This document shows positions 367 through 57,101 of a stretch of DNA of 64,000 nt, piece by piece. How positions within the stretch are numbered: the stretch's first letter is position 1; each line of letters starts with the position of its first letter. Where the stretch lies: contig OZ037772.1 of assembly GCA_964035545.1 (NCBI GenBank), forward strand, positions 10,724,818 through 10,788,817, given 5' to 3'. The notes below the pieces were generated by a model, which searched no databases, was not told the origin of the DNA, and worked only from the letters and a program-made list of their open reading frames with translations. This DNA comes from Bugula neritina. Taxonomy: Eukaryota; Animalia; Bryozoa. A program made the position numbers and the translations under genes.

Positions 367-1598
367 ATGTCTGTGTTTCCACAACGTAAGTATGCAACAT
401 TATGTAAAACTTGCAAACCATGTGGTAATATTTGAAACAGGCAGTTTAAAACATGTAGAGGCAACTTCTTAGAAATTTGGTTCAAGTATAAAGTGCATGG
501 TAATAAGTTTCTTAAATATACTATTTTGAAGTAATTGACCATATATTTGAAATAGACAGTGTAAAACATGTAGAGGCAACTTCTTATAATGATTTCATTC
601 ACATATAGATAGTCAATCTTTCTTAATATCTTTTTTCAGTTGTTGACCAACAAAAGATTCTTCAAACATCTAATCACTACCAACAGGAAACATCTAATCA
701 CTATGCTGACTGGGAGACTTTTTATGATAGTTTAGACTCTACAGAACAGTATAAACATCCAGTAAACTCAGACACTTCTACTTCTACTCTCACTGCAAAC
801 ACTCAACCTTTTCTTAAGATGCCACCTGCTGTATCTGACACTTACCTACCAAATGGTACCAAGAGGAAACTTTCGGATTGCTGGGAGAACACGATTCCAA
901 ATCAAAATTATTCTCCTGTAAACTCAGTCACTCCGTTCAAAAAATTTTATTCAATTTATCAAAGTGCTGATGACACAAAAGCTGCAGCTCACGACAAATA
1001 TCTACCAGAAAATCACACTAGAAAGAACCAGTGCGAGAGTACCAACACATTTGGGGACATATTTGATCAGAAACAAGATGTAGTGAGTCCAGCAAAAACA
1101 AGCTGCAAGAAGAAAAAATCTGTTAACAAAACTTCTGAGGATGGATCTACAAAACAGGTTAGACTTACTAAACATGGAAAGTGGCAGACGAAGATGAAAG
1201 ATTTTCAATGTCTTCTTTGTAGTTACAAATCGGAAGATAAAAGTAGTCTAACCAGGCATATGAGAGTACACACAAAAGAGAAGCCATTTGTCTGCCAAGT
1301 CTGTGGTAAAGCTTTTGCTCATCGAAGCAATCTCACAGTGCACATGCGAAGACATACTGGAGAAAAACCTTTTCAGTGTGATCAATGTGACTATAAGGCT
1401 GTACATCAAGGTAATCTCAAAGCACACATGAGAATACACACTGGAGAGAAACCTTTCCAGTGTAAACTATGTGACTATAAGGCTGTTCAGAAAACACATC
1501 TTGTTCATCATATGAAAAAACACAAAAATGAAACTTGGTTTGCCGGTGAAGTTAAAAAATGTGTATTTACAAAGACAAGTTATACAGTGAATTTCTAA
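367..1598 (+). CDS. U1: C2H2 zinc-finger protein, 4 fingers, two coding exons (no intron 2)
   Basis: Exon 367-385 (ATG TCT GTG TTT CCA CAA C|gtaagt), then ttttttcag|640-1598, in frame with ORF 819..1598. Contains [12 protein letters not shown], four C2H2 fingers and TGEKPF linkers. Confidence 0.85.
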
Positions 1599-1644
1599 TT
1601 CCAAACATCAGGAGAACCTCTATGCTGCTATCTCTAAGTTAGAC

Positions 1645-1734
1645 GCATCACATTTGAGACTCGCATCACATTTGAGACTCGCATTACATTTGAGACTCGC
1701 ATCACATTTGAGACTCGCATCACATTTGAGACTC
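1645..1734. repeat. 18-bp tandem repeat x5 (gcatcacatttgagactc)
   Basis: Five consecutive copies, one with a c>t change, in the U1 3' flank. Paralogous flanks carry one copy (e.g. ~8490). Confidence 0.95.
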
Positions 1735-2647: not shown

Positions 2648-4492
2648 ATGTCTGTGTGTCCACCTTGTAAGTATACAACATTATAAAAAACTTGCAAGCT
2701 AATTGTCAATATTTGAAACAAACATCGTAAAACATGTAGAGACAATGTGTTAGTAATTTGGTTTAAGTATAAATCTGTAATAAGTTTCTTTATCTATCAT
2801 GTTACAGTTGCTGACCAACAGAAGATTCTTCAAGCATCTAATCACTACCAACAGGAAACATATCAATATGCTGACTGGGAGACTTTTTATGATAGTTTAG
2901 ACTCTACAGAACAATATAAACATCCAGTAAACTCAGACACTTCTACTTCTACTCTCTCTGTAGACACTCAACCTGTTCTTAAGATGTCACTTGCTGTATC
3001 TGACACTTACCTACCAAATGGTACAGTCAGGGAACATTCGGATTGCTGGGAGAATGTAACTACAAATCTAAGCCCCTCCATCGTAAACTTAGTTACTTCA
3101 ACTTCCACAGTCAGCACAGAAGCTACAGTGTATGACAACTATCTACATCGAGACCAACCTGATGTTCCTCTCTCTGAAGTTATCTCTGAGGCTTTTGCAG
3201 TTTTAGGGCTGAATATTTCATCAGATGTCAACTCAAGTGGTGAGTATTATATTTATTAAAATATATTTAGAACAATCTCTTTCTTTCAAAACTATAATGT
3301 TGGTGTGACATTATAATCAACTTCACTCTTTTAGATGTTTGAATTACTTTTGGTATAAATACAGAGTATAGGTATCATTCTTTATGACATTGAAAATTTT
3401 GATTTGATGAATTCAACAAATTAGTTTGATTTACAATTCTCATTTTGATATACAAACAAATTTATTACGAGGTGCAATATTTGAAATACATTTATTGTCC
3501 TAAATAACTGAACTAATGTCTTTACATTACAACAATGAATTACCTAAAGTGCAATTTACAAACTAATTAGTAAATTATAGATGTTATAATTTTCTTCATG
3601 TTTTATAGAGAAAATTCAAACAGAAGTTGATAGAAGAGATGCTACTGATAACTTAGTAGATGCATTGTGTAAAGGAGCACATGGATACAACACAAACAGA
3701 ATTACAGAAACTCACACTATTACAAGTCAGAGTGTAACTGCCAACATATTTAGAGATGTATTTGATCAAGAAGAAAATGTAGTGAGTCCAGTAAAATCAT
3801 ATTGCAAAAAGAGGGAACTTGTTGATAACACTTGTGAATATGAATCTCTAAGGCAGGTTAGACTTGCTAAGCATAGAAAGTGGCAGATGACCAAGAAGAA
3901 AGATTTTCAATGTTTTCTATGTAATTACAAAACGGAACGTAAAAGTAGTCTTGTCCAGCATATGAGAACACACACAAAAGAAAAGCCATTTGTTTGTAAA
4001 TTCTGCGATCACGCTTTTACTCAGCAAAATAGTGTCACAGCACACATGAGGACACACACTGGAGAGAAACCTTTTCAGTGTGATCAATGTGACTACAGGT
4101 CAGTGCGGCAGAGTAATCTCATAGCACACATGGGGACACACTCTGGAGAGAAACCTTTTCGATGTAATCAGTGTGACTACAAGTCAGTGCGGCAGAGTAA
4201 CCTTATAGCACACATGAAGACACATGCTAAAGAGAAACCATTTGTGTGCGGTGTATGTGACTATAGGACTAGATTTAAGAGTAATCTTAATCATCACCTG
4301 ATGACACACACTAGAGAAAAACCTTTTCAGTGCCCAAAGTGCGACTACAAATCAATACTGCAAAAAGCTCTCACAGTGCACATGAGGAAACACACAAGAG
4401 AGAAACCATTTCACTGTAAACTCTGTAACTACAAGGCTGCTCAGAAAGGAAGTCTTGTTCATCACACGAAAAAACACAACAAAGAAACTTGA
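2648..4492 (+). CDS. U2: C2H2 zinc-finger protein, 7 fingers
   Basis: Exons 2648-2666, 2808-3239 and 3609-4492, with GT-AG phase-1 introns. Exon 3 is the alternative 'EKIQTEVD' type. Confidence 0.85.
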
Positions 4493-5862: not shown

Positions 5863-7910
5863 ATGTCTGTGTACCACCATGAATGTAAGTATATCATTCT
5901 GTAATACTTGCATACTATATATATATGTCAAAATTTGTAACAGACAGTGTAAAGCATGTAGAGACAACTTCTTAGTAAGTTTACTTATGTATGTAAGTCT
6001 CTTTGTTATCATGTTACAGTTGTTGACCAACAGAAGATTCTTCAAAGATCTAATCACTACCAACAGGAAACATATCACTATGCTGACTGGGAGACTTTTT
6101 ATGATAGTTTAGACTCTACAGAACAATATAACTATTCAGTAAACTCAGATACTTCTACTTCTACTCTCACTGCAAACACTCAACCTTTTCTTAAGATGTC
6201 ACCTGCTGTATCTGATACTTACCTACCAAGTAGTACTACAAGGAAACTTTCGGATTGCTGGGAGAGCCTTAGTCTGAATCAAAATTCATTTCCTGTAAAC
6301 TCAGTCGCTCTATTCCAAACAATTGATTCAAATTATCAAAACTCTGATAACACAGCTACAGTATATGACAACTGTGTAAAAGAAAAACCTGATGTTCCTT
6401 TGTCTGAAGTTATCTCTGAGGCTTTTACAGTTTTAGGACTGAATACTACATCAGACTTCAATTTAACCGGTGAGTCTTTATGAATAGTTGTAAACTTATT
6501 TTATTGATGACATTCAAAATAAATCTTCTAAAAAAAGTGCTTCTTAAGAAGATAGCATTACCATGAGTTTGATTAAGTAATTGACATGTAATTACAAAGT
6601 AATTGTAAAAATCAATTACATTAGATGTGTAATTAATTACAATTACAACTACAATCACATTTGTATACATCAGTTACAAATTTCATTCAATTACTTGACA
6701 AATTGTAAATAATTACAACCAATTAAAATTACAAAGTACAATTACTCCAACCCTGATATGTACTCTCTATATATTATAAGTATAATTATACCATATACTA
6801 ACATGCACAAATTCAACAGTATTGGTAGCATATAGAAACTCATGCAAGTTTGCGTTTAAAAGTAATATATTTTTGTAAAAATCGTAATGCCTAACTAAAA
6901 TGTACTCCTACAGCCACTTGGATATACTTGCAACACTAACTCAGATAAAATGTTTTCCTATTTCAAGAATATGTCTACATAACCGTGCTATACAAGGAGC
7001 CCTATATTAGCCAACAGAATTGCAGTAAAATTATCATCTACTTATATAGTGTATTAAAATCCTATAACGTAATGCGACATACTATAGTTTGTGCCACTTT
7101 GATGAGCCAGAAGTGATGTTGAAATGTTGCAGATGCTGTTTTACATTTTGTTTTACAGATAAAACGCGAACGGATTTCAAGACAAGAAACTTTTGTGTCA
7201 GTCTAGTTGATACAATTTTCAAAATGGCAGATGACTATAAGGTGTTTAGCGGGTTATACAAAGATACAGAGCGTAGTGCTTGTGATACACTGGGTACCGA
7301 TAGAGCACCTTGTAGAGATGAACAGGATCAAAAAGATGCTCTAGTGAAAGAAGTGAGAGCAAAATCTGATGGTAAACATAAAAAATTGCAGGCAAAGATA
7401 AAATCCTTTCAATGTTTTTTATGTACTTACAAGACTCAACGCAAAAGTAGTCTTACTCGGCATGTGAGAGTACACACAAAAGAAAAACCATTTGTCTGTA
7501 AAGTCTGCGATCATGCTTTTACTCATAAATGTAATCTCAAAGCACACATGAGAATACATACTGGAGAAAAACCTTTTCAGTGCAATCAGTGTGACTATAA
7601 GACCAGATTTAAGAATAGTCTTACTCAGCACAAATGGAAACACACTGGGAATAAACCATGTTTCTGCTATGTTTGCAAAAAAACATTTACTCAACAATGT
7701 AACCTGACAACTCACATGAGAATACACACTGGAGAGAAACCATTTCTCTGTACACTATGTGACTACAAGGCAGCGCAGCAAAGTGATCTCACTATACATA
7801 TGAGGAAACACACTGGGGAGAAACCATTCCACTGTAAACTATGTGACTACAAAGCTGCTCGAAAAGGGCATCTTGTTCGCCATTTAAAAAAACACAACAA
7901 AGAAACTTGA
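5863..7910 (+). CDS. U3: C2H2 zinc-finger protein, 6 fingers
   Basis: Exons 5863-5884, 6020-6469 and 7159-7910. Frames match ORFs 6196..6483 and 7089..7910. Confidence 0.85.
6556..6755. mobile_element. One-ended non-autonomous DNA transposon (hAT/MITE-like) remnant in intron 2, co-duplicated with the units
   Basis: GTAATT/AATTAC-rich subterminal repeats ending ...caattactccaaccctg (reverse complement CAGGGTTGG, hAT-like terminus). Copies end near 10920, 14825, 18624, 30292, 34752, 36843, 40856, 44295, 48160, 51745 and 55669. No opposite terminus found. Confidence 0.55.
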
Positions 7911-7928
7911 TTTGCTGCATGGAGATCT

Positions 7929-8379
7929 ATGCATGAAAACATGAATTTGCAGTGCGGAACTACCAATGCATTTGTAAACATATTTGATCAGAAACAAGAT
8001 GTCGTGAGTCCAGCAAAAACGAACTGCAAGGAGCAGGAATTCGTACATAATACTTCTGCAGATAGATCTACAAAACAGGTTAGATTCACTAAACACAGAA
8101 AATGGCAGACCAAGATGAAAAATTTCCGATATCTTCTCTGTAGTAACAAAGCGGAAGGTAAAAGTAGTCTAAATAGGCGTATGAGAGTACACACAAAAGA
8201 GAAGCCATTTGTCTTCAAAATCTGTAGTCACGCTTTTACTCAGCAAGGTAATTTCACAGTGCACACATACGGAAACACACTGAAGGAAAACCATTTCACT
8301 GTATAAACTGTGTGGCTACAAGGCTGCTCAGAGAGTACATCTTGTTTGTTGTGTGAAAAATCCCAACCAAGAAACTTGA
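7929..8379 (+). pseudogene. Decayed 'ghost' ZF module after the U3 stop
   Basis: U1-like linker (IFDQKQDVVSPAK) followed by fingers missing Cys/His ligands and a frameshift. Confidence 0.8.
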
Positions 8380-10110: not shown

Positions 10111-12317
10111 ATGTCTGTGTATCACCATGAATGTAAGTATATCATTCTGTAAAACTTGCAAACTATATGTATGTCAATATTTGCAACCGACAGTGTAAAG
10201 CATGTAGAGACAACCTCTTAGTGAGTTTACTTATGTATGTTATAAGTATCTTTTTTATCATGTTACAGTTGTTGACCAACAGAAGATTATTGAAACATCC
10301 AATCACTACAAACAGGAAACATCTGATCACTTTGCTGACTGGGAGACTTTTTATGATAGTTTAGACTCTGCAGAACAGTATAAACATCCAGTAAACTCAG
10401 ACACTTCTACTTCTACTTTCACTGCAGACACTCAACCTTCTCTTGAGATGCCACCTGCTGTATTTGACACTTATCTACCAAATAGTACTGTCAGGGAAAA
10501 TTATGATTGCTGGGAGAATATAAGTACAAATCAGAATTACTCCACTGTAACCTTAGTTACTTCAACTTCCATAATCAATGCAAGCAATCAAAACTCTGTC
10601 AGCACAGAAGCTACAGTATATAACAACTATCTACATCAAGATGAACCTGATGTTCCTCTGTCTGAAGTTATCTCTGAGGCTTTTGCAGTTTTAGGACTAA
10701 ATATTTCATCAGATGTCAACTCAAGTGGTGAGTTTTTATGAATAGTTGTAAATTCATTTTAGTGACATTCAAAATAAATCTTCTAAAAAAAATTGTTCAT
10801 CAAAGATGAGAAGATACAATCACACTTTCATATATCAGTTACAAATTACATTCAATTACTTGAAAAAATGTAAATAATTAAAAACAAATAAAATTACAAA
10901 TTACAATTACTCCAACCCTGATATGTACTCTCTATAAATACTATCACTTATACTGGTGTACATAACTTCAACAGTATTGGTAGCATATAAGAAACTCGTA
11001 CAAGTTAGCATTTATAAGTAATATATTTTTAAAAGAAAATTAAATGAAATGTACTTTTATAACCACTTGCATATACCTGCGTAACTTGCCTAAATCAAAC
11101 TTTTTCCTATTCCGAGAATATGTCTTCATTATAGCTGTACTATATACAAAGAGTCTTGCATTAGCCAACAGAATTGCAGTAAAATTATCATTTACTAGTT
11201 CATCGAAAGCCTATAACGTAACACAAAATACTATAGGTTGCACTGATAAAATTGATATGAACTAGAAGTGATGCTGAAATGTTACAGATACTGTTTTACG
11301 TTTTGTTTTACAGATCAAACTCAAGCGGATTTAAAGATAAGAAACTTTTGTGTCAGTCTAGTTGATACAATTTTCAAAATGGCAGATGACTCTAAGGTGT
11401 TTAGCAGGTTATACAAAGATACAGAGCATAGTGCTTGTGATACACTGGGTACTGATAGAGCACCTTGTAGAGATGAACAGGATCAAAAAGATCCTCTGGT
11501 GAAAGATGTGAGAGCAAAATCTGATCCTAAACATAAAAAAATGCAGGCAAAGATAAAAGACTTTCAATGTCTTTTATGTGCTTACAAGACTCAACATAAA
11601 AGTAATCTTACCCGGCATGTGAGAGTACACACAAAAGAAAAACCATTTGTCTGTGAAGTCTGTGGTCACGCTTTTACTCAGCAAAGTAATCTCAAAGCAC
11701 ACATGAGAAGACATACAGGAGAAAAACCTTTTCAGTGTGATCACTGTGACTACAAGTCAGCAGAGCAAAGTAACTTCATAAAGCACATGAGAACGCACAC
11801 TGGAGAAAGACCTTTTCAGTGTGATCAATGTGGCTATAAGGCTGTACAGCAAGCTAGTCTTACAGCACACATGAGAAGACACACTGGAGAGAAACCTTTT
11901 CAGTGTGATCAATGTGACTATAAAACCAGAGTTAAGAGTGCTATTATTGTGCACAAAAGAAGACACACTAGATGTAAACCATTTGAGTGTAATGTTTGTA
12001 AAAAGTCTTTCAGTCATAAACTCACTCTACTTTCACACATACGCACTCATACAGGTGAGAAACCATTTGAGTGCAATGTATGTGACTATAAAACTGGAAG
12101 AAAAAGTAATCTTATTCAGCACATGAAAAAACACACCAGAGAAAAACCTTTTTATTGCACACATTGTGAATACAAATCAGCACATAAAAATGATATCAAT
12201 AGTCACATGAGAATACACACTGGAGAGAAACCATTTCACTGTAAACTATGTGACTACAAGGCTACTCAGAAAGTACATCTTGTTTATCATATAAAAAAAC
12301 ACAACAAAGAAACTTGA
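10111..12317 (+). CDS. U4: C2H2 zinc-finger protein, 9 fingers
   Basis: Exons 10111-10132, 10269-10727 and 11314-12317. Confidence 0.87.
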
Positions 12318-13932
12318 CTTCCTGCATGGGGATGTATGCATGAAAACATGCATTTACAGAAGCATGTTATTTTACAGTAAGTAGATTTTACATGTATGAT
12401 GGTAGAAAAACCTCTTCACTGCTATCTTTGAGTTTGACACATATTATAGTATTTCACACTCTACAGGAAGAAACATATACGTGTATAACCATTACATAGA
12501 AGCCCTCTATAGTGTTCTTTTCTTTCTATCAGAAGTTTGTATTGCTCACAATATTTGTAAAACCGCCTAATAAAAGTTGCTAAAACCAAACTTCATTCCA
12601 CATAATATTATAATAGTGATATACAACATTAAGTTGAGATAATTTTTGTAAACTAACCTATCCATGAATTTATATAAATCTATTTACAACTGTTGGTTCT
12701 CTGCTTTTAGCCAGTGAAAAATCTCTCAGTGTCATGACAAGCCATGTGTGTACAGATGACTGATTAGAATTCTGTTAGTTTTGCCAAAATTGGGTATTAG
12801 TTTGAAAACCTAATTTTATATGCTGTTAATTTTTCATTAAATTGGAAAGATGTAGCTTTAGTTGATTAAATTATAACTGCATCATTTCTGCTATAAAATT
12901 CACCTGGTGGGAGCAGTTTTTTTAAGTAAATTATTATAATGCTCATTCAACCAGATAATGTTATATCAGTTTTATTGCTTGTAATTTAGGTACTTTTGGT
13001 ATGAAACATAATACATTTTATTTTGAAAAACTACATAAACTGCGTGACATATTATATACCAGCTTGTTTCAATATGCTCCCCCCCCCCCCCCCCCAGTAT
13101 ACAATCAATATATGAAAGTATATAGGTTAATTATTCTTGAATTCCTGCATTTTCTTTTTGAAATTGTTTCCAAAATTATAACAAGATACAATATTACTCT
13201 TACCACAAAATTTAAACCATAAAACAAGTATACATGCAAAGAAACAACTGATTTAGAGTTATCTTTTTTTATTATGATTTTCAGTTATCAAGCAGTAATT
13301 TTTTTTTACTCAGCACAAGTAGTTCGATAATTTTACTTAGAAAACTGCTAAATTAGTAAATATAGTAATTGCAAAGAATACATATTTTATATAAACATAT
13401 CCTTATAAAAGTCAAAATGGTACATTACTTTGACGTTTCACTTCATTGAAACACTAGGCATAAAAACAAAAGATCTTTTTGTTGCAAAGTCAAGAAATAA
13501 GACAAATTAGCAATACTGAACATTTTTCATAACAGTAGAAAACTTTTTGTTTAAAATTGTTTGTTTTAAATCATGTGATAATGCCCTCATCACATTTTAT
13601 ATTTACTGAATATTGCTTTCTTTTGCCAATGATTTTTGTATATATTTAAAATAATTTTGTAAGCCAACTCTGATAAACATGTAACAAAATGTTCTTCTGC
13701 AGTCGATAGAAAACACTCCAGGCTTTATTTCAGTTAAAAATTACCATTGTTCATCCAGCTTTAAACTGCAAAGCAGCTAACTATATATTATATAGCGGAA
13801 GGTTTTAGTGAACAGCTAACCTATGATATTGTCAATGAAGTATTTAGAGCCTATTTTATATTGTAAACTATTTATTCTGATGCTTTAGTCAATACTTAAT
13901 TTTAAATTTGAACTTAACCTAGATGATCCAAC

Positions 13933-15933
13933 ATGTCTCTGTGTCCACCATGTAAGTATAACATTCTGTAAAATTTGCAAACCATATGGTAATATTTAAA
14001 ACAGACAGTGTAAAGCATGTAGAGACAACTTCTTAGTAAGTTTACTTATGTATTTTATAAGTATCTTCTTTACCATGTTACAGTTGTTGACCACCAGGAG
14101 GTTCTTCAAACATCTAATCACTACACACATGAAACATATCAATATGCTGACTGGGAGACTTTTTATGATAGTTTAGACTCTACAGAACAGTATAAACATC
14201 CAGTAAACTCAGACACTTCTACTTCTGCTCTCACTGCAGACACTCAACCTTTTCTTAAGATGTCACCTGCTGTATCTGACACTTACCTACCAAATGGTAC
14301 TGTCAGGGAAAATTTCGGATTGCTGGGAGAACATAACTACAATTCAGAATTCCTCCTCTGTGAACTTAGTTACTTCAACTTCCACAATCAATGCATGCAA
14401 TCAAAGCTCTGTCAGCACAGAAGCTACAGTATATAACAACTATCTACACCAAGATGAACCTGATGTTCCTCTGTCTGAAGTTATCTCTGAGGCTTTTACA
14501 GTCTTAGGATTGAATATTACATCAGATTTCAACTCAAGTGGTGAGTCTTTTGAATAGTTGTAAATTCGTTTTAATGGCATTCAAAATAAGTCTTCTAAAG
14601 TAAATTGTTTATGAGAAGATAGAATTACCATAAGTTTTATTAGGTAATTGACATTTAATAATAAAGTAATTGTATAAATCAATTACATTACATATGTAAT
14701 TAATTACAATTATACTAACTACAATTACATTTTTATACATCAGTTACAAATTACATTCAATTACTTGAAAAAATGTAAATAATTAAAAACAATTAAAATT
14801 ACAAATTACAATTACTCTAACCTTGATATGTACCCTCTATTTATTATAGGTATAATTATCACTTATACTATAGCATGCACAAATTCAACAGTATTGGTAG
14901 CATAGAAACTCATGCAAGTTTGCGTTTAAAAGTAATATATTTTTGCAAAAATCATAATGCTTAAATAAAATGTACTTCTACGGCCACTTGTATATACTTT
15001 CAACACTAACTCAAATAAAATGTTTTCCTATTTCAAGAATATGTCTACATATATCATCTACTTATATAGTTTATCAAAATCCTATAACGTAATGTAACAT
15101 ACTATCACTTGTACCAAAGTTTGATGAGCCAGAAGTTATGTTGAAATGTTACAGATACTGTTTTATGTTTTTGTTTTACAGATCAAATGCAAACAGATTT
15201 AAAGATAAGAAACTTTTGTGTCAGTCTAGTTGATACAATTTTCAAAATGGCAGATAACTATAAGATGTTTAGCAGGTTATACAAAGATACAGAGAGTAGT
15301 GCTTGTGATACACTGGGTACTGATAGAGCACCTTGTAGAGATGAACAGGATCAAAATGATGCTCTGGTGAAAGATGTTAGAGCAAGGTCTGGTGCTAAAC
15401 ATAAAAATATGCAGGCCGAGATAAAAGACTTTCAATATCTTTTATGTACTTACAAGACTCAACACAAAAGTAAACTTACCCAGCATTTGAGAGTACACAC
15501 AAAAGAGAAACCATTTGTCTGTGAAGTCTGTGGCCACGCTTTTACTCAGCGAAGTAATCTCAAAGCACACATGAGACAACACACTGGAGAGAAACCTTTT
15601 CAGTGCAATCAATGTGACTTCAAATTAGCACAACAAACTACTCTCATAGTGCACATAAGGAGACATACTGGAGAGAAACCCTATCAGTGCAATCAATGTG
15701 ACTACAAGTCAACACAGCACAGTGTTCTCATAACACACATGAGGAGACACACTGGTGAGAAGCCATTTGTCTGTGAAGTCTGTGGTCACGCTTTTACTCA
15801 TCGAAGTAGTCTTACTACACACATGAAGAAACACACTCGAACAAAACCTTTTCAATGTGATTAATGTGACTACAAGGCTGCCAGGAGTGGAACTCTTGTT
15901 CGCCATATAAAAAAACACAAAAAAGAAGCTTGA
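13933..15933 (+). pseudogene. U5: ZF pseudogene
   Basis: Exons 13933-13951, 14084-14540 and 15182-15933. Three lesions: +1 frameshift at ~14310 (gggaaaatttcggat), Cys>Tyr in finger 1 (FQYLLC), premature TAA at 15862-15864 inside the last finger. Confidence 0.8.
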
Positions 15934-19681: not shown

Positions 19682-19699
19682 TTTGCTGCATGGGGATCT

Positions 19700-20142
19700 A
19701 TGCATGAGAACATGAATTTACAGTGCGGAACTACCAATGTATTTGTACACATATTTGATCAAAAACAAGATGTAGTGAGTCCAGCAAAAACAAACTGCAA
19801 CGAGAAGGAATTCGTACATAATACTGCTGAAGATAGATCTACAAAACAGATTAGACTCACTAAACACAGAAAATGGCAGACCAAGATAAAAAGTTTCCGA
19901 TGTCTTCTTTGTGTAGTCACAAAGCAGAAGGTAAAAGTAATCTAAACAGGCGTATGAGAGTACACACAAAGGGAAAGCCATTTGCCTTCAATATCTGTGG
20001 TCACGCTTTTACTCAGCAAGGTACTTTTACAGCGCACACATGAGGAAACCCACTAAAGAAAGCAATTCTACTGTATAAACTGTGTGGCTACAAGGCTGCT
20101 CAGAGAGTACATCTTGTTTGTCTTGTGAAAAAAGAATTTTGA
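19700..20142 (+). pseudogene. Ghost ZF module after U6
   Basis: Same linker as 7929, frameshifted degenerate fingers. Confidence 0.8.
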
Positions 20143-35713: not shown

Positions 35714-35731
35714 TTTGCTGAATGGGGATCT

Positions 35732-37998: not shown

Positions 37999-38016
37999 TT
38001 TGCTGCATGGAGATCT

Positions 38017-38467
38017 ATGCATGAAAACATGAATTTGCAGTGCGGAACTACCAATGCATTTGTAAACATATTTGATCAGAAACAAGATGTCGTGAGTCCA
38101 GCAAAAACGAACTGCAAGGAGCAGGAATTCGTACATAATACTTCTGCAGATAGATCTACAAAACAGGTTAGATTCACTAAACACAGAAAATGGCAGACCA
38201 AGATGAAAAATTTCCGATATCTTCTCTGTAGTAACAAAGCGGAAGGTAAAAGTAGTCTAAATAGGCGTATGAGAGTACACACAAAAGAGAAGCCATTTGT
38301 CTTCAAAATCTGTAGTCACGCTTTTACTCAGCAAGGTAATTTCACAGTGCACACATACGGAAACACACTGAAGGAAAACCATTTCACTGTATAAACTGTG
38401 TGGCTACAAGGCTGCTCAGAGAGTACATCTTGTTTGTTGTGTGAAAAATCCCAACCAAGAAACTTGA
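38017..38467 (+). pseudogene. Ghost ZF module after U11
   Basis: Translation identical to 7929..8306. Confidence 0.8.
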
Positions 38468-41923: not shown

Positions 41924-41941
41924 TTTGCTGCATGGGAATCT

Positions 41942-42375
41942 ATGCATGAAAACGTGAATTTACAGTATTTGTATTTGTATTTGATCAAAAACGAGGTGTA
42001 GTGAGTCCAGCCAAAACAAACTTCAACGAGAAGGAATTCGTACATAATACTTCTGAAGATAGATCTACAAAACAGGTTAGGCTCACTAAACACAGAAAAT
42101 GGCAGACCAAGATGAAACATTTTTGATGTCTTTTCTGTAGTAACAAAGCTAAATGCAAAAGTAATCTAACCAAGCATATGAGAGTACAAACAAAAGAAAT
42201 GCCATTTGCCTTCAAAATCTGTGGTCACGCTTTTACTCAGCAAGGTAATTTCACATTGCACACATGAGGAAACACACTGAAGAAAACAATTCTACTGTAT
42301 TAACTGTGTGGCTACAAGGCTGCTCAGAGAGTACGTCCTGTTTGTTGTGTGAAAAAACACAAACAAAAAACCTGA
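41942..42375 (+). pseudogene. Ghost ZF module after U12
   Basis: Stops and indels in a U1-like linker and fingers. Confidence 0.8.
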
Positions 42376-43391: not shown

Positions 43392-45639
43392 ATGTTTGTG
43401 TGTCCACCGTGTAAGTATACAACATTATAAAAAACTTGCAAGCTAATTGTCAATATTTGAAACAAACATCGTAAAACATGTAGAGACAATGTGTTAGTAA
43501 TTTGGTTTAAGTATAAATATGTAATAAGTTTCTTTATCTATCATGTTACATTTGCTGACCAACAGAAGATTCTTCAAGCATCTAATCACTACAAACAGGA
43601 AACATATCACTTTGCTGACTGGGAGACTTTTTATGATAGTTTAGACTCTGCAGAACAATATAAACATCCAGTAAACTCAGACACTTCTACTTCTACTCTC
43701 ACTGCAGACACTCAACATTTTTTTAAAATGCCACCTGCTGTATCTGACACTTACCTACCAAATAGTACTGCGATAGAACTTTCTGATTGCTGGGAGAACA
43801 TAACTACAAATCAGAATTCCTCTACTGTAACCTTAGTTACTTCAACTTCCACAATCAATGCAAACAATCAAAGCTCTGTCAGCACAGAAGCTACAGTGTA
43901 TGACAACTATCTACATCGAGAAGAACCTAATGTTCCTCTGTCTGAAGTTATCTCTGAGGCTTTTACAGTTTTAGGACTGAATATTACATCAGATTTCAAC
44001 TCAACTGGTGAGTCTTTCTGAATAGTTGTAAATTCAATTTATTATTAACTTTCAAAATAAATCTTCTAAAAGAATTGTTCATGAGAAGATAGAATTACCA
44101 TGAGTTTGATTAGGTAATTGACACGTAATTATAAATAATAATTGTAAAAATCAACTACATTAGATATGTAAATAAATACAATTACAACTACAATCAAACT
44201 TTCATACATCAGTTACCAATTACATTCAATTACTTGAAAAAAATGTAAATAATTACAACCAATTTAAATTACAAATAACAATTACTCCAACCCTGATATG
44301 TACTCTCTATAAGTATTATCTTGTATACTAACATGCACAAATTCAACAGTATTAGTAGCATAGAAACTCATGCAAATTTGCTTTTAAAATTAAGTAATAC
44401 ATTTTTGTAAAAATCATAATGCTTAAATGAAATGTACTTTTACAACCACTTGTATATACTTGCGTAACTAGCCTAAATCAAATTTTTTCTTATTTTGGAA
44501 ATATGTCTACATAGCTGTACCATACTTAAGGAGTTTTGCATTAGCCAACAAAATTGTAAAATTATCATTTACTATCATCTATCGAAAGCCTATAATGTAA
44601 TGCAACATAATATCACTTGTACCAAAGTTTGATTAGCCAGAAGTGATGTTAAAATGTTAGAGATACTGTTTTATGTTTTTGTTTTGCAGATCAAACTCAA
44701 ACGGATTTGAAGATAAGAAACTTTTGTGTCAGTCTAGTTGATACAATTTTCAAAATGGCAGATGACTATAAGGTGTTTAGCAGGTTATACAAAGATACAG
44801 AACATAGTGCTTGTGATACACTGGATACTGATAGAGCACCTTGTAGAGATGAACAGGATCAAAAAGATGCTCCGGTGAAAGATGTGAGAACATGGTCTAA
44901 TGCTAAAACACCTGCGTGTGACACCTGGAAAAGCAAATTAACTGAAAAACCTTCTGAAAAGAAAACAGTTTCTTTTCGTGTTTTAAATAATTCATTTGCT
45001 CAAAATTATTGCACAACTTCAAATATGAACCAACGCATTGGAAAGAAGCCCTTTGAATGTGATGTCTGTAAGAAGAAATTTATTTGCAAAAAATCTTTAA
45101 AATCACACAAGAGAAAACACACTATCGATAAACCATTTGATTGTGAAGTCTGTGGTGAAACCTTTACAAAGAAATCTCATCTTACTAAACACAGAAGAAC
45201 TTACACAGGAGAGAAGCCATTTGTCTGTGAAGTTTGTGGTCATGCTTTCACTCAGAAACCTCATCTCACCAAACATTTAAAAACACATTCTGGAGAGAAG
45301 CCATTTGTTTGTGGAGTTTGTAATTATGCTTTTGCTTTGAAAGGTAATCTCACTAAACACATGAGAATCCACACTGGTGAGAAGCCATTTGTCTGCAAAG
45401 TCTGTGGTCACGCTTTTACTCGTCAAAGTACTCTCATAATACATGAGAGAAGACATACTGGAGAAAAACCTTTTCAGTGCACTCAATGTAACTATAAGTC
45501 AGTGCGGCAGGCTGACCTCACTCTGCACATGAGAATACACACTGGAGAGAAACCTTTTCAGTGTAAACTATGTGACTACAAAGCTGCTCAGAAAGGAAGT
45601 CTTGTTCAACATATGAAAAAACACAACAAAGAAACTTGA
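43392..45639 (+). CDS. U13: C2H2 zinc-finger protein, 7 fingers (one degenerate), exon-2 acceptor mutated
   Basis: Exons 43392-43410, (43552)-44007 and 44690-45639. The acceptor reads gttacaT|ttgctg instead of gttacaG, but the frames are otherwise open. Confidence 0.65.
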
Positions 45640-47270: not shown

Positions 47271-49551
47271 ATGTCTGTGTACCACCATGAATGTAAGTAT
47301 ATCATTCTGTAAAACTTGCAAACTGCATGTCAATATTTGCAACAGACAGCGTAAAGCATGTAGAGACAACTTCTTAGTAAGTTTACTTATGTATGTAAGT
47401 CTCTTCTTTATCATGTTTCAGTTGTTGACCAACAGGAGATTATTGAAGCATCTAATCACTACAAACAGGAAACATATCACTTTGCTGACTGGGAGACTTT
47501 TTATGATAGTTTAGACTCTGCAGAACAATATAAACATTCAGTAAACTCAGACACTTCTACTTCTACTCTCACTGCAGACACTCAACCTGTTATTAACATG
47601 CCACTTGCTGTATTTGACACTTACCTACCCAATGGTGCTGTCAGGGAACATTCTGATTGCTGGGAGAATGTAACTACAAATCAAAATTCCTCCACTGTAA
47701 ACCTAAATACTTCAACTTACACAATCAATGCAAGCAATCAAAGCTCTGTCAGCACAGAAGCTACAGTATATAACTACTATCTACATCGAGAAGAACCTGA
47801 TGTTCCTCTGTCTGAAGTTATCTCTGAAGCTTTTACAGTCTTAGGACTGAATATTACATCAGATGTCAACTCAACTGGTGAGTCTTTCTGAATAGTTGTA
47901 AATTCATTTTAATAACCTTCAAAATAAATCTTTTAAAAAGAATTGTTTCTGAGAATATAGAATTACCATAAGTTTGATTAGGTAATTGACATGTAGTTAT
48001 AACGTAATTGTAAAAATTAATTACATTGGATATGCAATTAATTACAATTACAACTACAATCACATTTGTATACATCAGTTACAAATTACAATCAATTACT
48101 TGAAAAAATGTAAATAATTACAACTAATTTCGATTACAAATTACAATTACCCCAACCCTGATATGTACTCTCTATAAACATTATCACTTATACTAGCATG
48201 CACAAATTCAGCAGTATTGTTTGCATAGAAACTCATGCAGTTTTGCATTTATAAGTAATACTTTTTGTGAAAATCATAATGCCTATATGAAATGTACTTT
48301 TAGAACCACTTCTATGTACATACATAACTAACTTAAATAAAATGTTTTCCTATTATGAAAATACGTCTACATAGCTGTACTATACAAAGAGTCTTGCAAT
48401 ATCAGTTTTGCAAAATTATTTTCTATACTAGTTTATCAAAAGCCTATAATATAATGCGTCATAACATAGTTTGTGCTGATAAATTTGATGAGCCAGAAGT
48501 GATGTTGAAATGTTACAGATACTGTTTTATGTTTTATTTTACAGATCTAACTCAAGCGGATTTAAAGATAAGAAACTTTTGTGTCAGTCTAGTTGATACA
48601 ATTTTCAAAATGGCAGATGACTATAAGGTGTTTAGCAGGTTATACAAAGATACAAAGCGTGGTGCTTGTGATACACTGGGTACCGATAGAGTACCTTGTA
48701 GAGATGAACAGGGTCAAAAAGATGTTCTGGTGAAAGATGTGAGAGCAAAGTCTAATGCTAAACACCAAAAATTGCAGGCAAGGATAAAATACTTTCAATG
48801 TCTTTTATGTACTTACAAGACTCAACATAAAAGTAGTCTTACCCAGCATTTGAGAGTACACACAAAAGAAAAACCATTTGTATGTAAAGTCTGTGGTCAT
48901 GCTTTTACTCAGCGAAGTAATCTCACTACACACATGAGAAGACATACTAGAGAGAAACCTTTTCAGTGTGATCAATGTGACTATAAGGCTGTACAGCAAG
49001 CTAGTCTTACAGCACACATGATGAAACATACTAGAGAAAAACCTTTTCAGTGTGATCAATGTGACTATAAGACCAGAGTTAAGAGTGCTATTATTAGGCA
49101 CAAAAGGAGACACACCGGGTGTAAACCATTTGAGTGTAATATTTGTAAAAAGGCTTTTAGTCAAAAACCCACCCTACTTTCACACATACGCACTCATACA
49201 GGAGAGAAACCATTTGAGTGCAATGTATGTGACTATAAAACTGGAAGAAAAAGTAATCTTATTCAGCACATGAAAAAACACACTGGAGAGAAACCATTTG
49301 AGTGCAATGTATGTGACTATAAAAGTGGAAGAAAAAGTAATCTTATTCAGCACATGAAAAAACACACCGGAGAAAAACCTTTTCATTGCACACATTGTGA
49401 ATACAAATCAGCACATAAAAGTGATATCACTGTGCACATGAGGAAACACACTGGGGAGAAACCATTCCACTGTAAACTATGTGACTACAAGGCTGCTCAG
49501 AAAGTACATCTTGTTCACCATATTGTAAAAAAACACAACAAAGAAACTTGA
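47271..49551 (+). CDS. U14: C2H2 zinc-finger protein, 9 fingers
   Basis: Exons 47271-47292, 47422-47877 and 48545-49551. Confidence 0.86.
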
Positions 49552-50942: not shown

Positions 50943-53142
50943 ATGTCTGTGTACAACCATGAATGTAAGTATATCATTCTGTAAAGCCTACAAACTATAT
51001 GTCAAGATTTGCAACAGAAAGTGTAAAGCATGTGGAGACAACTTCTTAGTAAGTTTACTTATGTATTTTATAAATATCTTTGTTACCATGTTACAGTTGC
51101 TGACCACCAGGAGATTCTTCAAACATCTAATCACTACCAACAGGAAACATCTCACTATGCTGACTGGGAGACTTTTTATGATAGTTTAGACTCTGCAGAA
51201 CAATATAAACATCCAGTAAACTCAGACACTTCTTCTTCTACTCTCACTGCAAACACTCAACCTGTTCTTAAGTTGCCACCTGCTGTATCTGACACTTACC
51301 TACCAAATGGTACTGTCAGGGAAAATTATAATTGCTGGGAGAACATAACTACAAATCATAATTCTTCCTCTGTAACCTTAGTTCCTTCAACTTCCATAAT
51401 CAATGCAAGCAATCAAAACTCTGTCAGCACAGAAGCTACAGTATATAACAACTATCTACATCAAGATGAACCTGATGTTCCTCTGTCTGAAGTTATCTCT
51501 GAGGCTTTTGCAGTTTTAGGACTAAATATTTCATCAGATGTCAACTCAAGTGGTGAGTTTTTATGAATAGTTGTAAATTCATTTTAGTGACATTCAAAAT
51601 AAATCTTCTAAAAAAAATTGTTCATCAAAGATGAGAAGATACAATCACACTTTCATATATCAGTTACAAATTACATTCAATTACTTGAAAAAATGTAAAT
51701 AATTAAAAACAATTAAAATTACAAATTACAATTACTCCAACCCTGATATGTACTCTCTATAAATACTATCACTTATACTGGTGTACATAACTTCAACAGT
51801 ATTGGTAGCATATTAGAAACTCGTACAAGTTAGCATTTATAAGTAATATATTTTTAAAAGAAAATTAAATGAAATGTACTTTTATAACCACTTGCATATA
51901 CCTGCGTAACTTGCCTAAATCAAACTTTTTCCTATTCCGAGAATATGTCTTCATTATAGCTGTACTATATACAAAGAGTCTTGTATTAGCCAACAGAATT
52001 GCAGTAAAATTATCATTTACTAGTTCATCGAAAGCCTATAACGTAACACAAAATACTATAGGTTGCACTGATAAAATTGATATGAACTAGAAGTGATGCT
52101 GAAATGTTACAGATACTGTTTTACGTTTTGTTTTACAGATCAAACTCAAGCGGATTTAAAGATAAGAAACTTTGGTGTCAGTCTAGTTGATACAATTTTC
52201 AAAATGGCAGATGACTCTAAGGTGTTTAGCAGGTTATACAAAGATACAGAGCATAGTGCTTGTGATACACTGGGTACTGATAGAGCACCTTGTAGAGATG
52301 AACAGGATCAAAAAGATCCTCTGGTGAAAGATGTGAGAGCAAAATCTGATCCTAAACATAAAAAAATGCAGGCAAAGATAAAAGACTTTCAATGTCTTTT
52401 ATGTGCTTACAAGACTCAACATAAAAGTAATCTTACCCGGCATGTGAGAGTACACACAAAAGAAAAACCATTTGTCTGTGAAGTCTGTGGTCACGCTTTT
52501 ACTCAGCGAAGTAATCTCAAAGCACACATGAGAAGACATACAGGAGAAAAACCTTTTCAGTGTGATCACTGTGACTACAAGTCAGCAGAGCAAAGTAACT
52601 TCATAAAGCACATGAGAACGCACACTGGAGAAAGACCTTTTCAGTGTGATCAATGTGGCTATAAGGCTGTACAGCAAGCTAGTCTTACAGCACACATGAG
52701 AAGACACACTGGAGAGAAACCTTTTCAGTGTGATCAATGTGACTATAAAACCAGAGTTAAGAGTGCTATTATTGTGCACAAAAGAAGACACACTGGATGT
52801 AAACCATTTGAGTGTAATGTTTGTAAAAAGTCTTTCAGTCATAAACTCACTCTACTTTCACACATACGCACTCATACAGGTGAGAAACCATTTGAGTGCA
52901 ATGTATGTGACTATAAAACTGGAAGAAAAAGTAATCTTATTCAGCACATGAAAAAACACACCAGAGAAAAACCTTTTTATTGCACACATTGTGAATACAA
53001 ATCAGCACATAAAAATGATATCAATAGTCACATGAGAATACACACTGGAGAGAAACCATTTCACTGTAAACTATGTGACTACAAGGCTACTCAGAAAGTA
53101 CATCTTGTTTATCATATAAAAAAACACAACAAAGAAACTTGA
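50943..53142 (+). CDS. U15: C2H2 zinc-finger protein, 9 fingers
   Basis: Exons 50943-50964, 51097-51552 and 52139-53142. Nearly identical to U4 from late exon 2 onward. Confidence 0.86.
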
Positions 53143-54780
53143 CTTCCTGCATGGGGATGTATGCATGAAAACGTGCATTTACAGAAGCATGTTATTTTAC
53201 AGTAAGTAGATTTTACATGTATGATGGTAGAAAAACCTCTTCACTGCTATCTTTGAGTTTGACACATATTATAGTATTTCACACTCTACAGGAAGAAACA
53301 TATACGTGTATAACCATTACATAGAAGCCCTCTATAGTGTTCTTTTCTTTCTATCAGAAGTTTGTATTGCTCACAATATTTGTAAAACCGCCTAATAAAA
53401 GTTGCTAAAACCAAACTTCATTCCACATAATATTATAATAGTGATATACAACATTAAGTTGAGATAATTTTTGTAAACTAACCTATCCATGAATTTATAT
53501 AAATCTATTTACAACTGTTGGTTCTCTGCTTTTAGCCAGTGAAAAATCGCTCAGTGTCATGACAAGCCATGTGTGTACAGATGACTGATTAGAATTCTGT
53601 TAGTTTTGCCAAAATTGGGTATTAGTTTGAAAACCTAATTTTATATGCTGTTAATTTTTCATTAAATTGGAAAGATGTAGCTTTAGTTGATTAAATTATA
53701 ACTGCATCATTTCTGCTATAAAATTCACCTGGTGGGAGCAGTTTTTTTAAGTAAATTATTATAATGCTCATTCAACCAGATAATGTTATATCAGTTTTAT
53801 TGCTTGTAATTTAGGTACTTTTGGTATGAAACATAATACATTTTATTTTGAAAAACTACATAAACTGCGTGACATATTATATACCAGCTTGTTTCAATAT
53901 GCTCCCCTCCCCCAGTATACAATCAATATATGAAAGTATATAGGTTAATTATTCTTGAATTCCTGCATTTTCTTTTTGAAATTGTTTCCAAAATTATAAC
54001 AAGATACAATATTACTCTTACCACAAAATTTAAACCATAAAACAAGTATACATGCAAAGAAACAACTGATCTAGAGTTATCTTTTTTTATTATGATTTTC
54101 AGTTATCAAGCAGTAATTTTTTTTTACTCAGCACAAGTAGTTCGATAATTTTACTTAGAAAACTGCTAAATTAGTAAATATAGCAATTGCAAAGAATACA
54201 TATTTTATATAAACATATCCTTATAAAAGTCAAAATGGTACATTACTTTGACGTTTCACTTCATTGAAACACTAAGCATAAAAACAAAGGACCTTTTTGT
54301 TACAAAGTCAAACAATGAGACAAATTGGCAATACTGAACATCTTTTATAACAGTAGAAAACTTTTTGTTTAAAATTGTTTGTTTTAAATCATGTGATAAT
54401 GTCCTCATCACATTTTATATTTACTGAAGATTGCTTTCTTTTGCCAATAATTTTTGTATATCTTTATAATAATTCTGTAAGTCAACTCTGATAAACATAT
54501 AACAAAATGTTCTACTGCAGTCGATAGAAAACACTCTTGGCTTGATTTTAGTCAGAGATTCACACTATTGTTCAATCAGCTTTAAACTGCAAAGCAGCTA
54601 ACTGTATAGCAATAAAATGCTTGAGTGAACAGCTAACCTATGATATGGTCAATGAAGGATTTATAGCATATTTTATCTTGTAAACTATATATCCTAATGT
54701 CATAGTCAAGATTTAATTCTTTTAACATTATTTACAATAATTTATATCATTGTTTCTCAGCAATATCTAGATCATCCAAC

Positions 54781-57101
54781 ATGTCTGTGTACCACCATGA
54801 ATGTAAGTATATCATTCTGTAAAACTTGCAAACTATATGTCAATATTTGTAACAGACAGAGTAAAGCATGTAGAGACAACTTCTTAGTAAGTTTACTTAT
54901 GTATGTTAGTATCTTTGTTATCATGTTACAGTTGTTGACCAACAGGAGATTCTTCAAACATCTAATCACTACCAACAAGAAACATATCAATATGCTGACT
55001 GGGAGACTTTTTATGATAGTTTAGACTCTGCAGAACAATATAAACATCCAGTAAACTCAGACACTTCTACTTCTATTCTCACTGCAAACACTCAACCTGT
55101 TCTTAAGATGTCACCTGCTGTATCTGACACTTACCTACCAAATGCTATTGTCAGGGAACATTCGGATTGTTGGGAAAACATAACTACAAACCAAATTTCC
55201 TCCTCTGTAAACTTAGTTACTTCAGCTTCCACAATTAATGCAAGCAATCAAAGCTCTGTCAGCACAGAAGCTACAGTGTATGACAACTATCTAGATCAAG
55301 AAGAACCTGATGTTCCCCTGTCTGAAGTTATCTCTGAAGCTTTTACAGTTTTAGGACTGAATATTACATCAGATGTCAATTTAACTGGTGAGTCTTTTGA
55401 ATAGTTGTAAATTCATTTTGATAACATTCAAAATAGATCTTCTAAACAAAATTGTTCATTAGAAGATAAACTTACCATAAGCCTGATTAAGTAATTGACA
55501 TGTAATTATAAAGTAATTGTATAAATTAATTACATTATATATGTAATTAATTACAATTACAACTACAATCACACTTTCATGCATCAGTTACAAATTACAT
55601 TCAATTACTTGAAAAAAATGTAAATAATTACAACCAATTTAAATTACAAATTACAATACTCCAACCCTGATATTTACGCCCCTATAAGTATTATCACTTA
55701 TACTAGCATACATAACTTCAACAGTATTGTTCGCAAAGAAACTCATGCGGTTTTGCATTTATAAGTAATAATTTTTTTGTGTGAAAATCATAATGCTTTA
55801 ATGAAATGTACTTTTATAACCATTTGTGTATACTTGCGTAACTAACTTAAATGTAATGTTTTCTTATTATAAGAATATGTCTACATAGCTGTACTGTACA
55901 AGGAGTCTTGCAATAGCCAACAAAATTGCAGTATGTTGAAATGTTACAGATACTGTTTTACATTTCATTTTGTTTTACAGATCAAATGCAAACAGATTTC
56001 AAGACAAGAAACTTTTGTGTCAGTCTGGTTGATACAATTTTTAAAATGGCAGATAACTATAAAGTGCTTAGCAGGTTATACAAAGATACAGAGCATAGTG
56101 CTTGTGATACGCTGGTTACTGATAGAGCACCTTGTAGAGATGAACAGGATCAAAAAGATGTTCTGGTGAAAGATGTGAGAGCAAAGTCTGATGCTAAGAC
56201 AACTGCCTGTGACACTTGGAAAAGCAAATTAACTAAAAAACCTTCTGAAAAGAAAACATTTTCTTCTGGTGTTTTAAATAATTCATTTGCTCAAAATCAT
56301 TGCATAACTTCAAATATGAACCAAAGCATTGAAAAGAAGCCTTTTGAGTGTGATGTCTGTAAGAAGGATTTTATATGCAGAAGTTCTTTAAAATCACACA
56401 AAAGAAAACACACTAATGATAAACCATTTGTTTGTGAAGTCTGCGGTGGAACCTTTACTCAGAAATCTCATCTAGCCAGACACAGAAGAACTCACACGGG
56501 AGAGAAGCCATTTGCTTGTGAAGTTTGTGGTCATGCTTTCACTCAGCAGGGCAATCTCAGCAAACACATGAGAATACATATAGCAGAGAAACCTTTTCAG
56601 TGCAATCAGTGTGACTTCAAAACATCACATCGAAATAATCTCACAGCACACATAAGGAGACATACTGGAGAGAAACCTTTTCAGTGTGATCAATGTGATT
56701 TCAAATCAGCACAACAAACTACTCTCATAACACACATGAGAAGACACACTGGAGAGAGGCCCTATCAGTGCAATCAATGTGACTACAAGTCAGCGCAACG
56801 AAGTAACCTGAGAACACACATGAGGAAACACACTGGAGAGAAGCCATTTATCTGCGAAGTCTGTGGTCACGATTTTACTCATCAAAGTACTCTCATAACA
56901 CACATGAGAAGACATACTGGAGAGAAACCTTTTCAATGCAATCAATGTGACTATAAGTCAGTGCGGCAAAGTGAGCTCACTGTGCACATGAGAAAACACA
57001 CTGGAGAGAAGCCATTTCAGTGTAATTTATGTGACTATAAATGCAGTATAAAATATGGCCTTACCAAACACATGAAAACACATCAGCAAAAAGGCATTTA
57101 A
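54781..57101 (+). CDS. U16: C2H2 zinc-finger protein, 9 fingers, last unit
   Basis: Exons 54781-54802, 54932-55387 and 55981-57101. The final finger and TAA stop are unique. Confidence 0.86.

Follow-up and report, generated by a model that had tools for sequence, protein, structure and literature searches.

What kind of gene family has been built up in this stretch of the Bugula neritina genome, and what might its products do? The stretch analysed here (the window, 64,000 nucleotides in length; C8:10724818-10788817 of the 216-Mb, ~31% G+C assembly that was searched) carries an array of zinc-finger units, designated U1 to U16, which all lie on the same strand and extend from 367, the ATG of U1, to 57101. 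Sixteen such units had been proposed in an original prediction made from the sequence, and both their number, by tblastn, and their extent were confirmed. Judging from their sequence, these units represent a family of zinc-finger transcription factors, so far found only in Bugula-type bryozoans. The encoded proteins are rather likely to be sequence-specific DNA-binding regulators, in which short conserved helices would dock a cofactor and the tandem fingers would set the target.

Each unit follows the same plan, consisting of a micro-exon, an exon 2 of ~455 nt and a single exon encoding tandem Cys2-His2 (C2H2) fingers, 4-9 in number, as had been predicted. A tblastn search with one exon-2 translation located 15 complete or near-complete copies of exon 2 in the window, along with a 117-nt remnant in U11. 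All of them are on the plus strand, between 609 and 55398, and every copy is followed by a poly-C2H2 exon (16/16). Since the exon-2 matches of this chromosome segment all fall inside the window, the array is complete at 16 units. Splice sites were inferred from sequence conservation and reading frame. Alignment upstream of exon 2 recovered the shared micro-exon expected from the earlier description in 15 units, where it consists of an ATG (context ccaacATG) plus 16 or 19 nt, followed by a GTAAGT or GTGAGT donor. It is thus 19 or 22 nt long, a difference of three bases, and the phase is therefore 1 in all of these units. Exon 2 starts with TTGCTGAC after ttacag and ends, likewise in phase 1, with ..ACTG before GTGAGT, and exon 3 starts with ATCAAA.. 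after ttttacag. Exon 3 occurs in two versions, termed A-type and B-type, the latter with the head EKIQTEVDRRDATDNLVDALCKGAHGY...

Uninterrupted GT-AG open reading frames (ORFs) of 380-532 aa with 5-9 fingers are present in 12 of the 16 units (U2-U4, U6-U10, U12, U14-U16), and the remaining four (U1, U5, U11, U13) are damaged. The two deaths noted at the outset, those of U5 and U11, were upheld; the lost acceptor of U13 and the deleted motif of U1 have to be added to them, which reduces the number of fully intact units to 12. Exon-2 frames of 150 codons remain open in 13/16 units. Because stops would be expected at roughly 8% of random codons given the base composition here (our estimate), these frames are not due to chance. 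The finger exons match the Pfam families zf-C2H2 and zf-H2C2_2 with E values of 1e-21 to 1e-72. Two other gene models were considered and rejected. A single giant gene with alternative 3' finger exons, in the style of lola or mod(mdg4), is ruled out by the presence of a start-codon exon and an exon 2 in each unit. Units carried as transposon cargo are ruled out as well, as terminal repeats are absent and the head-to-tail order with co-duplicated dead exons is the pattern of segmental tandem duplication.

The part of the protein preceding the fingers differs from that of known zinc-finger families. Exon 2 encodes about 150 residues, acidic and rich in Ser, Thr, Asn and Gln; exons 1-2 together have a net charge of -15 to -21, 3-8 basic residues and an S/T/N/Q content of 36-39%. 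Exon 2 matched no Pfam-A family at E values up to 1 (hmmscan) and yielded no meaningful sequence match in the PDB, while Pfam searches of the region N-terminal to the fingers detected no KRAB (PF01352), ZAD (PF07776), SCAN, BTB or SET domain. The N-terminus thus resembles none of these five modules, as had been anticipated. A spliced 65-aa segment covering the two helices described below and the exon 2/3 junction had no Pfam match at E values up to 10 and no PDB match, again in line with expectation, and the exon-3 ORFs matched only finger-type and a few spurious Pfam-A families. An alignment of 26 exon-2 copies from five clusters in the genome, referred to as A1, contains no conserved Cys quartet of the ZAD kind. 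When A1 was used as a profile against 1.84 billion representative proteins, seven matches were obtained, all of them short ORF calls of 77-169 aa and none from outside Bugula-derived sequence, so the proposal of a lineage-specific family stands. One of the seven is KAF6037386.1, a 78-aa hypothetical protein of Bugula neritina, and the others belong to a JGI metagenome and to Logan assemblies with which it has contigs in common.

Within this region, conservation is concentrated in short islands. Modelling of exon 2 by AlphaFold2 (AF2) with A1 gave a mean predicted local distance difference test score (pLDDT) of 48.8, indicative of disorder, and the sole sizeable helix, at residues 130-140, coincides with a conserved motif. 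This motif, predicted as an amphipathic helix of ~16 residues, closes exon 2; in U12, for example, it is encoded at 40494..40541 (+), at the 3' end of the exon. A pattern scan found the core to be identical, except for T or A at one position, in 14 window instances, whereas U6 has PDVSL...SESF and U1 is without the motif. The ratio of nonsynonymous to synonymous differences per site (pN/pS) is 0.10 for the 13-residue core within the window, compared with 0.57-0.72 in its flanks, and the core is retained in clusters whose exon 2 is otherwise about 35-50% identical. The motif helix appears to be under purifying selection. A further predicted helix (NLVDxIFKxAD) forms the head of exon 3, where AF2 assigns pLDDT values of 86-90 to the first 20 residues. 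Once intron 2 is spliced out, about 12-17 residues separate the two conserved predicted helices, which are followed by a charged linker and then by the 4-9 tandem fingers. The linker of A-type exons has a pN/pS of about 1 at very low divergence. On prediction and conservation, exons 1-2 are best described as an acidic disordered region with short conserved islands and no folded domain. The notion of a constant N-terminal module is not supported in the form put forward originally, since exon 2 is disordered and fast-evolving (dN/dS about 1 between lineages) and only the short helices are conserved. These helices, one closing exon 2 and the other opening exon 3, would provide a docking site for a co-regulator and would thus constitute the effector.

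Fingers were collected by scanning the window and four sister-array loci with the required spacing C-x2-C-x12-H-x3-[HC], which means that the zinc ligands are fixed by the search pattern itself. The scan found 144 fingers, joined by TGEKP-like linkers. Outside the pattern, the scaffold is strongly kept, with F at position 0, L at +4 and the TGEKP linker. Variability among the 144 fingers is highest at helix positions -1, 2, 3 and 6 and at a few others. In 73 closest cross-gene finger pairs, which are non-independent, the contact codons (-1, 2, 3, 6) have a pN/pS of 0.86 versus 0.38 for the other 24 codons. The corresponding counts of nonsynonymous to synonymous differences are 71:17 and 165:101 (Fisher p = 0.001, with the same non-independence of pairs). 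These selection statistics, being simple counts on non-independent paralogues, indicate that protein change is faster at the DNA-reading positions and fall short of proof of positive selection. The fingers would give each paralogue its own DNA target.

At the level of whole finger exons, the diversity is more limited than the original prediction implied. The sets do vary between units; they are, however, not sixteen different ones, and the finger strings resolve into about seven architectures with shared first and last fingers. Apart from U13 and U16, the A-type units (11 in number) have their first finger in common, and three related types account for the last fingers. Between them lie the internal blocks JKLM(N)O, JPLMO and JPQRSTUV(W/O), along with two strings of c-type and three of B-type, and contact residues differ even within homologous fingers. 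The idea of a variable DNA-reading module is nonetheless sustained by the faster change at contact positions than in the scaffold and by the different finger number of an orthologue in another lineage, which is described below.

The array records how this diversity arises. The two exon-3 types align over their whole non-finger part and share the islands NLVDxLxKxA.(E/D)Y and DxxDQK(D/E)xxV, which identifies them as diverged copies of one exon. B is probably the older type, because it is common to the clusters on C1 and C4. In seven units (U3, U6, U7, U9-U12) a decayed B exon lies 20-50 nt after the functional exon 3. Most of these remnants have lesions in common: of the six that still hold finger 2, five lack its first Cys, and five remnants have the same frame break after ..FTVHT. 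The exon was thus already dead when the units were copied, as is characteristic of segmental tandem duplication. Two pairs of duplicate segments bear witness to recent births, as had been claimed: 6386-9375 and 36475-39462 are 96.8% identical, and 9746-13901 and 50583-54718 are 95.2% identical with a core at 99.5-100%.

Beyond duplication, the nearest relative of a unit changes with the segment compared. U2 and U13 are 97% identical upstream, yet they have different exon-3 types, and U3 and U10 have a distinct exon-2 subtype in common. Between U4 and U15, identity reaches 99-100% across intron 2 and the head of exon 3, compared with 94% in exon 2 and 87% upstream. A sliding comparison of these two units, which are 40 kb apart, revealed a sharp-edged 2.8-kb block of 99.5-100% identity (10600..13400, plus strand, with its partner at about 51440-54230) between flanks of 80-91%. 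The left edge of the block lies in the motif-coding end of exon 2, and the block spans all of exon 3. Such a tract bears the marks of recent gene conversion or recent exchange, and the earlier view of mosaic units in a recombining array is borne out. In a maximum-likelihood tree of exon 2, two subtypes are separated with a Shimodaira-Hasegawa-like approximate likelihood ratio (SH-aLRT) support of 99, and the window units interleave with those of a second array at C8:4.61-4.65 Mb, U3 pairing with unit L004a at a support of 98. Tandem duplication, unequal exchange and gene conversion all diversify the array, as do swapping of exon-3 types, gain and loss of internal fingers and change of contact residues.

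The family extends beyond the window. Genome-wide, at least 89 exon-2 matches were counted, in five clusters and as scattered fragments. In addition to the window array, the clusters comprise the second array at C8:4.61-4.65 Mb, which is inverted, those at C4:16.55-16.64 Mb and C1:26.74-26.78 Mb, and a divergent one at C8:8.45-8.59 Mb. In every cluster sampled (C8:4.6, C4:16.6, C1:26.7 and C8:8.5 Mb), a motif-bearing exon is followed by a finger exon on the same strand. The inverted or sister array (C8:4612001-4656000, loci L001-L004, minus strand), 6 Mb away from the window, contains about 10 units, among which both types of exon 3 occur. In the exon-2 tree, single units of this array pair with single units of the window (for example U3 with L004a, U10 with L002c and U12 with L004b), which points to block duplication or ongoing inter-array exchange. 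In the divergent cluster (C8:8448000-8590000, L012-L014), two or three tandem motif modules precede the finger exon in single genes or ORFs.

A comparison between lineages is also available. The GenBank contig assigned to B. neritina and the metagenome contigs are only 78-88% identical in DNA to the present genome, so they derive from a different lineage or species. In this second lineage, contig L024 shows synteny to the 3' end of the window: a last zinc-finger unit is followed by a Mutator-like ORF and then by the downstream sequence, with 87% identity across 3.1 kb and 79% across 2 kb. The finger exon of this contig most resembles those of U16 and U13, with which it shares its c-type first finger and a linker insertion, and contains 12 fingers versus 9-10. 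Its exon 2, on the other hand, belongs to the opposite subtype to that of U16, with a dN/dS of 1.04 between the two. With the finger exon kept and exon 2 of the other subtype, the positional orthologues must have exchanged exon 2 since the split.

Several observations weigh against reading the family as DNA-binding regulators that dock a cofactor. Outside the motif, exon 2 has a pN/pS of 0.7-0.9 among close paralogues and a dN/dS of 1.04 between the lineages, values that would fit weak or no function too. Synonymous change in the motif is also low (pS about 0.15), and part of the motif conservation could be due to constraint at the DNA or RNA level or to gene conversion. The contact-site pN/pS is below 1 and compatible with relaxed constraint, and the finger pairs from which it was derived are non-independent. 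The L024 unit has a frameshift in its linker, which is also found in an independent contig. A search with the exon-2 part of the U1 open frame found no full-length annotated relative, and public annotation comprises only the 78-aa hypothetical protein. Finally, the sole sequencing run matching 2550-8500 covers introns and exons alike and has no intron-skipping joints; it therefore consists of DNA contigs, is uninformative on expression and offers no transcript evidence. Among the Logan and JGI matches no spliced transcript contig was present, all of them carrying the intron and thus being genomic.

Tetrapods (KRAB), insects (ZAD) and carp-like fish (FiNZ) each have lineage-specific zinc-finger expansions with an N-terminal effector of their own, and such expansions are central to the idea that conflict with transposons drives transcription-factor evolution. 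By analogy, the Bugula family can be regarded as a new, non-homologous instance of this known gene-regulator design; no literature on Bugula zinc-finger families was found. It shares with KRAB-ZFPs the combination of a conserved effector exon and a variable poly-finger exon, arrangement in tandem clusters, births and deaths, and faster change of contact residues. Its N-terminus is, however, disordered and without a KRAB domain, whereas KRAB is a folded box that binds TRIM28; KRAB-ZFPs bind transposons and recruit TRIM28/SETDB1. With ZAD-ZNFs it has in common a clustered, lineage-specific C2H2 expansion with a family-specific N-terminal module, but ZAD is a zinc-binding dimerisation fold with four cysteines, and no conserved cysteine quartet occurs in the Bugula islands. 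Factors that act through short motifs (PxVxL for HP1, eh1 for Groucho, SID for Sin3, and acidic activation helices) likewise carry, within a region that is acidic and disordered, an amphipathic helix of 12-16 residues that is conserved. Compared with the consensus patterns, the Bugula motif is not known to fit any of these exactly: the x residues of PDVPL deviate from the HP1 pattern, FTVLGLN has N as its last residue, a place that is hydrophobic in eh1, and the A-A of the Sin3 type is E-A.

The closest precedent appears to be that of the FiNZ-ZNFs of cyprinid fish, a set of about 700 genes whose 28-aa Glu-rich N-terminal sequence has no known homology; they are expressed at genome activation, and their knockdown leads to derepression of transposons (Wells et al. 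2023, Genome Res, PMC10547256). The likeness consists in a lineage-restricted tandem expansion of poly-C2H2 genes, a short, acidic, novel N-terminal sequence (28 aa in FiNZ, about 16-28 aa in Bugula) and fast-evolving fingers. In contrast, the Bugula family numbers tens of genes, and its motif closes a 150-aa disordered exon, while the FiNZ sequence lies at the extreme N-terminus. The two families were compared by description only, and given the host lineages homology is very unlikely, so that the parallel is one of analogy only. A bryozoan family with an unrelated and very short motif would add an independent case from the Lophotrochozoa, and in the compact, fully sequenced array duplication, gene conversion, the swapping of exons and the turnover of fingers are directly visible. 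If the motif does recruit a silencing or activating cofactor, it would be a new effector motif; if it is inert, the array would be an ordinary fast-evolving gene cluster.

Four alternative or more specific explanations were considered. The least doubtful of them, by a small margin, is that the proteins are ordinary lineage-specific activators, with the acidic, aromatic-rich, disordered exon 2 serving as activation domain, host genes as targets and no link to transposons. The net charge of -15 to -21, the 25 W/F/Y/L residues in 160 aa and the single amphipathic helix in a disordered context agree with this, and the acidic-aromatic islands resemble acidic activation domains in composition. Composition on its own cannot, however, separate activators from repressors, and KRAB and FiNZ sequences are Glu-rich too.

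A second explanation, raised as a possibility in the original prediction and also doubtful, is that the proteins are repressors engaged in transposon surveillance. As with KRAB-ZFPs and FiNZ-ZNFs, the paralogues would then have young transposons as their targets, and a silencing cofactor would be brought in by the motif. The clustered, recombining array with its fast turnover, the faster change of contact residues and the difference in finger number between lineages would be expected under such a model, and the N-terminal motif, being short, acidic and confined to one lineage, is comparable to the 28-aa Glu-rich sequence of the transposon-repressing FiNZ family (PMC10547256). In addition, most copies have PDVPL just before the helix, a segment that fits PxVxL, the HP1-ligand pattern in its loose form, and a single HP1 gene with a chromoshadow domain was found in the genome. 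The curated pattern for HP1 ligands is, however, not known to allow D and P at the two x positions, and the P and V of this segment vary more than the helix does (SDAPL, EPEALL and ESNVPQ also occur). Furthermore, nothing ties any paralogue to a transposon, the contact-site pN/pS stays below 1, and only about seven finger architectures exist among 16 units. A fuller version, in which bryozoans would have independently evolved a KRAB- or FiNZ-like genome defence of tens of recombining genes, whose intron-split, two-helix acidic motif recruits a silencing cofactor to young transposons, draws on the same analogy and is unlikely.

It is more doubtful still that the helix acts as a localisation or assembly signal, either as a CRM1 nuclear export signal or as part of a dimerising helix pair with the exon-3 helix, in the manner of ZAD, SCAN and BTB. 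The spacing I-x3-F-x2-L-x-L matches class 1a export signals, and the two conserved predicted helices, which flank the exon 2/3 junction with about 12-17 residues between them, could suit dimerisation; short hydrophobic patterns, however, fit many helices by chance. A largely non-functional relic array, whose silent or decaying copies would be homogenised by gene conversion and would owe their open frames to youth rather than selection, can claim the four damaged units, the near-neutral exon 2 outside the motif (pN/pS 0.7-1.0), the A-type linker with a pN/pS of about 1, the frameshifted orthologue and the lack of RNA support from the one run at the locus, but is improbable in view of the motif core at 0.10, the non-contact finger sites at 0.38, the kept finger scaffold, the splice sites and phases kept in 12 units, the architecture kept across five clusters (35-50% identity) and two lineages, and the decayed B exons, which show what real decay looks like.

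The individual units can be described as follows (all on the plus strand). U1 (367..1598) has exon 1 at 367-385, and its exon 2 continues in frame directly into a B-type finger exon (640-1598 for the two), giving an open frame of 325 aa with 4 fingers. The in-frame deletion joins ..KYLPE of exon 2 to ..NHTRKNQ of the B-type exon 3 and has removed the conserved motif, the second intron and the beginning of exon 3. U2 (2648..4492; exons 2648-2666, 2808-3239 and 3609-4492) is intact and encodes 444 aa with 7 fingers in a B-type exon 3. U3 (5863..8306; exons 5863-5884, 6020-6469 and 7159-7910) is an intact A-type unit of 407 aa and 6 fingers, followed by a decayed B exon at 7950-8306. U4 (10111..12317; exons 10111-10132, 10269-10727 and 11314-12317) is intact, with 494 aa and 9 fingers. 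U5 (13933..15864) is a pseudogene with an exon-2 frameshift near 14310, a Cys to Tyr change in finger 1 and a premature stop in the finger exon. U6 (17727..20100; exons 17727-17748, 17881-18339 and 19014-19681) is intact, with 382 aa and 5 fingers, and its decayed B exon begins at 19721 and ends, approximately, near 20100. U7 (21814..24000; exons 21814-21835, 21968-22423 and 22787-23583) encodes 424 aa with a B-type exon 3 of 5 intact fingers and a last finger without its final His; its second, decayed B exon runs from 23613 to an approximate end near 24000. U8 (25889..27829; exons 25889-25910, 26040-26498 and 26826-27829) is intact, with 494 aa and 9 fingers.

Three intact units of 5 fingers each also precede decayed B exons: U9 (29398..32069; exons 29398-29416, 29549-30007 and 30678-31345; 381 aa; decayed exon 31394-32069), U10 (33856..35900; exons 33856-33877, 34012-34467 and 35046-35713; 381 aa; decayed exon from 35762) and U12 (39949..42300; exons 39949-39967, 40114-40569 and 41256-41923; 380 aa; decayed exon from 41965). 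U11 (36453..38394), between the latter two, is a truncated copy of U3 without exon 1, consisting of the last 117 nt of exon 2 (36453-36569), exon 3 (37247-37998) and a decayed B exon (38038-38394). U13 (43392..45639; exons 43392-43410, 43552-44007 and 44690-45639) has an open frame with one finger His changed to Tyr and is probably disabled; the acceptor of its exon 2 reads AT instead of AG (43550-43551). The last three units are intact and have 9 fingers each: U14 (47271..49551; exons 47271-47292, 47422-47877 and 48545-49551; 494 aa), U15 (50943..53142; exons 50943-50964, 51097-51552 and 52139-53142; 493 aa) and U16 (54781..57101; exons 54781-54802, 54932-55387 and 55981-57101; 532 aa), the last being the unit with a positional orthologue in the second Bugula lineage (L024).

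Some features flank or interrupt the coding exons. In most units (e.g. 10081-10110) a polypyrimidine tract with a CAG acceptor-like site lies 24 nt before the ATG; it is absent in U3 and U7, and in L024 (about 1850-1863) it is found 4 nt before the ATG. Such a site suggests an upstream 5' exon or a trans-spliced leader. No bryozoan report turned up in a literature search on spliced-leader trans-splicing, whose matches, judged by title and abstract, apparently all concern chaetognaths. Intron 1 of most units (e.g. 10202-10226) contains a conserved ATG-TAG mini-frame followed by a perfect GTAAGT donor (catgtagagacaacttcttaGTAAGT), which may serve as a decoy or alternative donor. In L024, intron 1 holds an insertion of roughly 230 nt (about 1990-2200) with a tRNA-like box-B segment (GGTTCAAACCCC); ARAGORN detected no tRNA there, and the insertion may be a short interspersed nuclear element.

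Directly after the array, at 58004-59860 (+), lies an intact Mutator-like transposase ORF of 618 aa (Pfam PF20700, E 5e-58). It is single-copy, as the next best genomic copy is 63% identical and about 8 other copies form a separate, near-identical family. The ORF occupies the same syntenic place in the second lineage (L024 5521-7338, 605 aa), with a dN/dS of 0.21, and is a candidate domesticated transposase gene. A TG/TA-rich simple repeat at 62324-62701 gives rise to spurious Cys/Val/Tyr-rich ORFs, and a protein-kinase exon of a neighbouring gene (Pfam Pkinase, E 1e-20) is present at 63637-63969 (+). Elsewhere in the genome, the only chromoshadow-domain (HP1) gene found is at C4:20646319-20646560 (L017, minus strand), where a phase-2 intron after ..FLMKW splits the domain, and the Sin3 PAH domains were located and are likewise intron-split.

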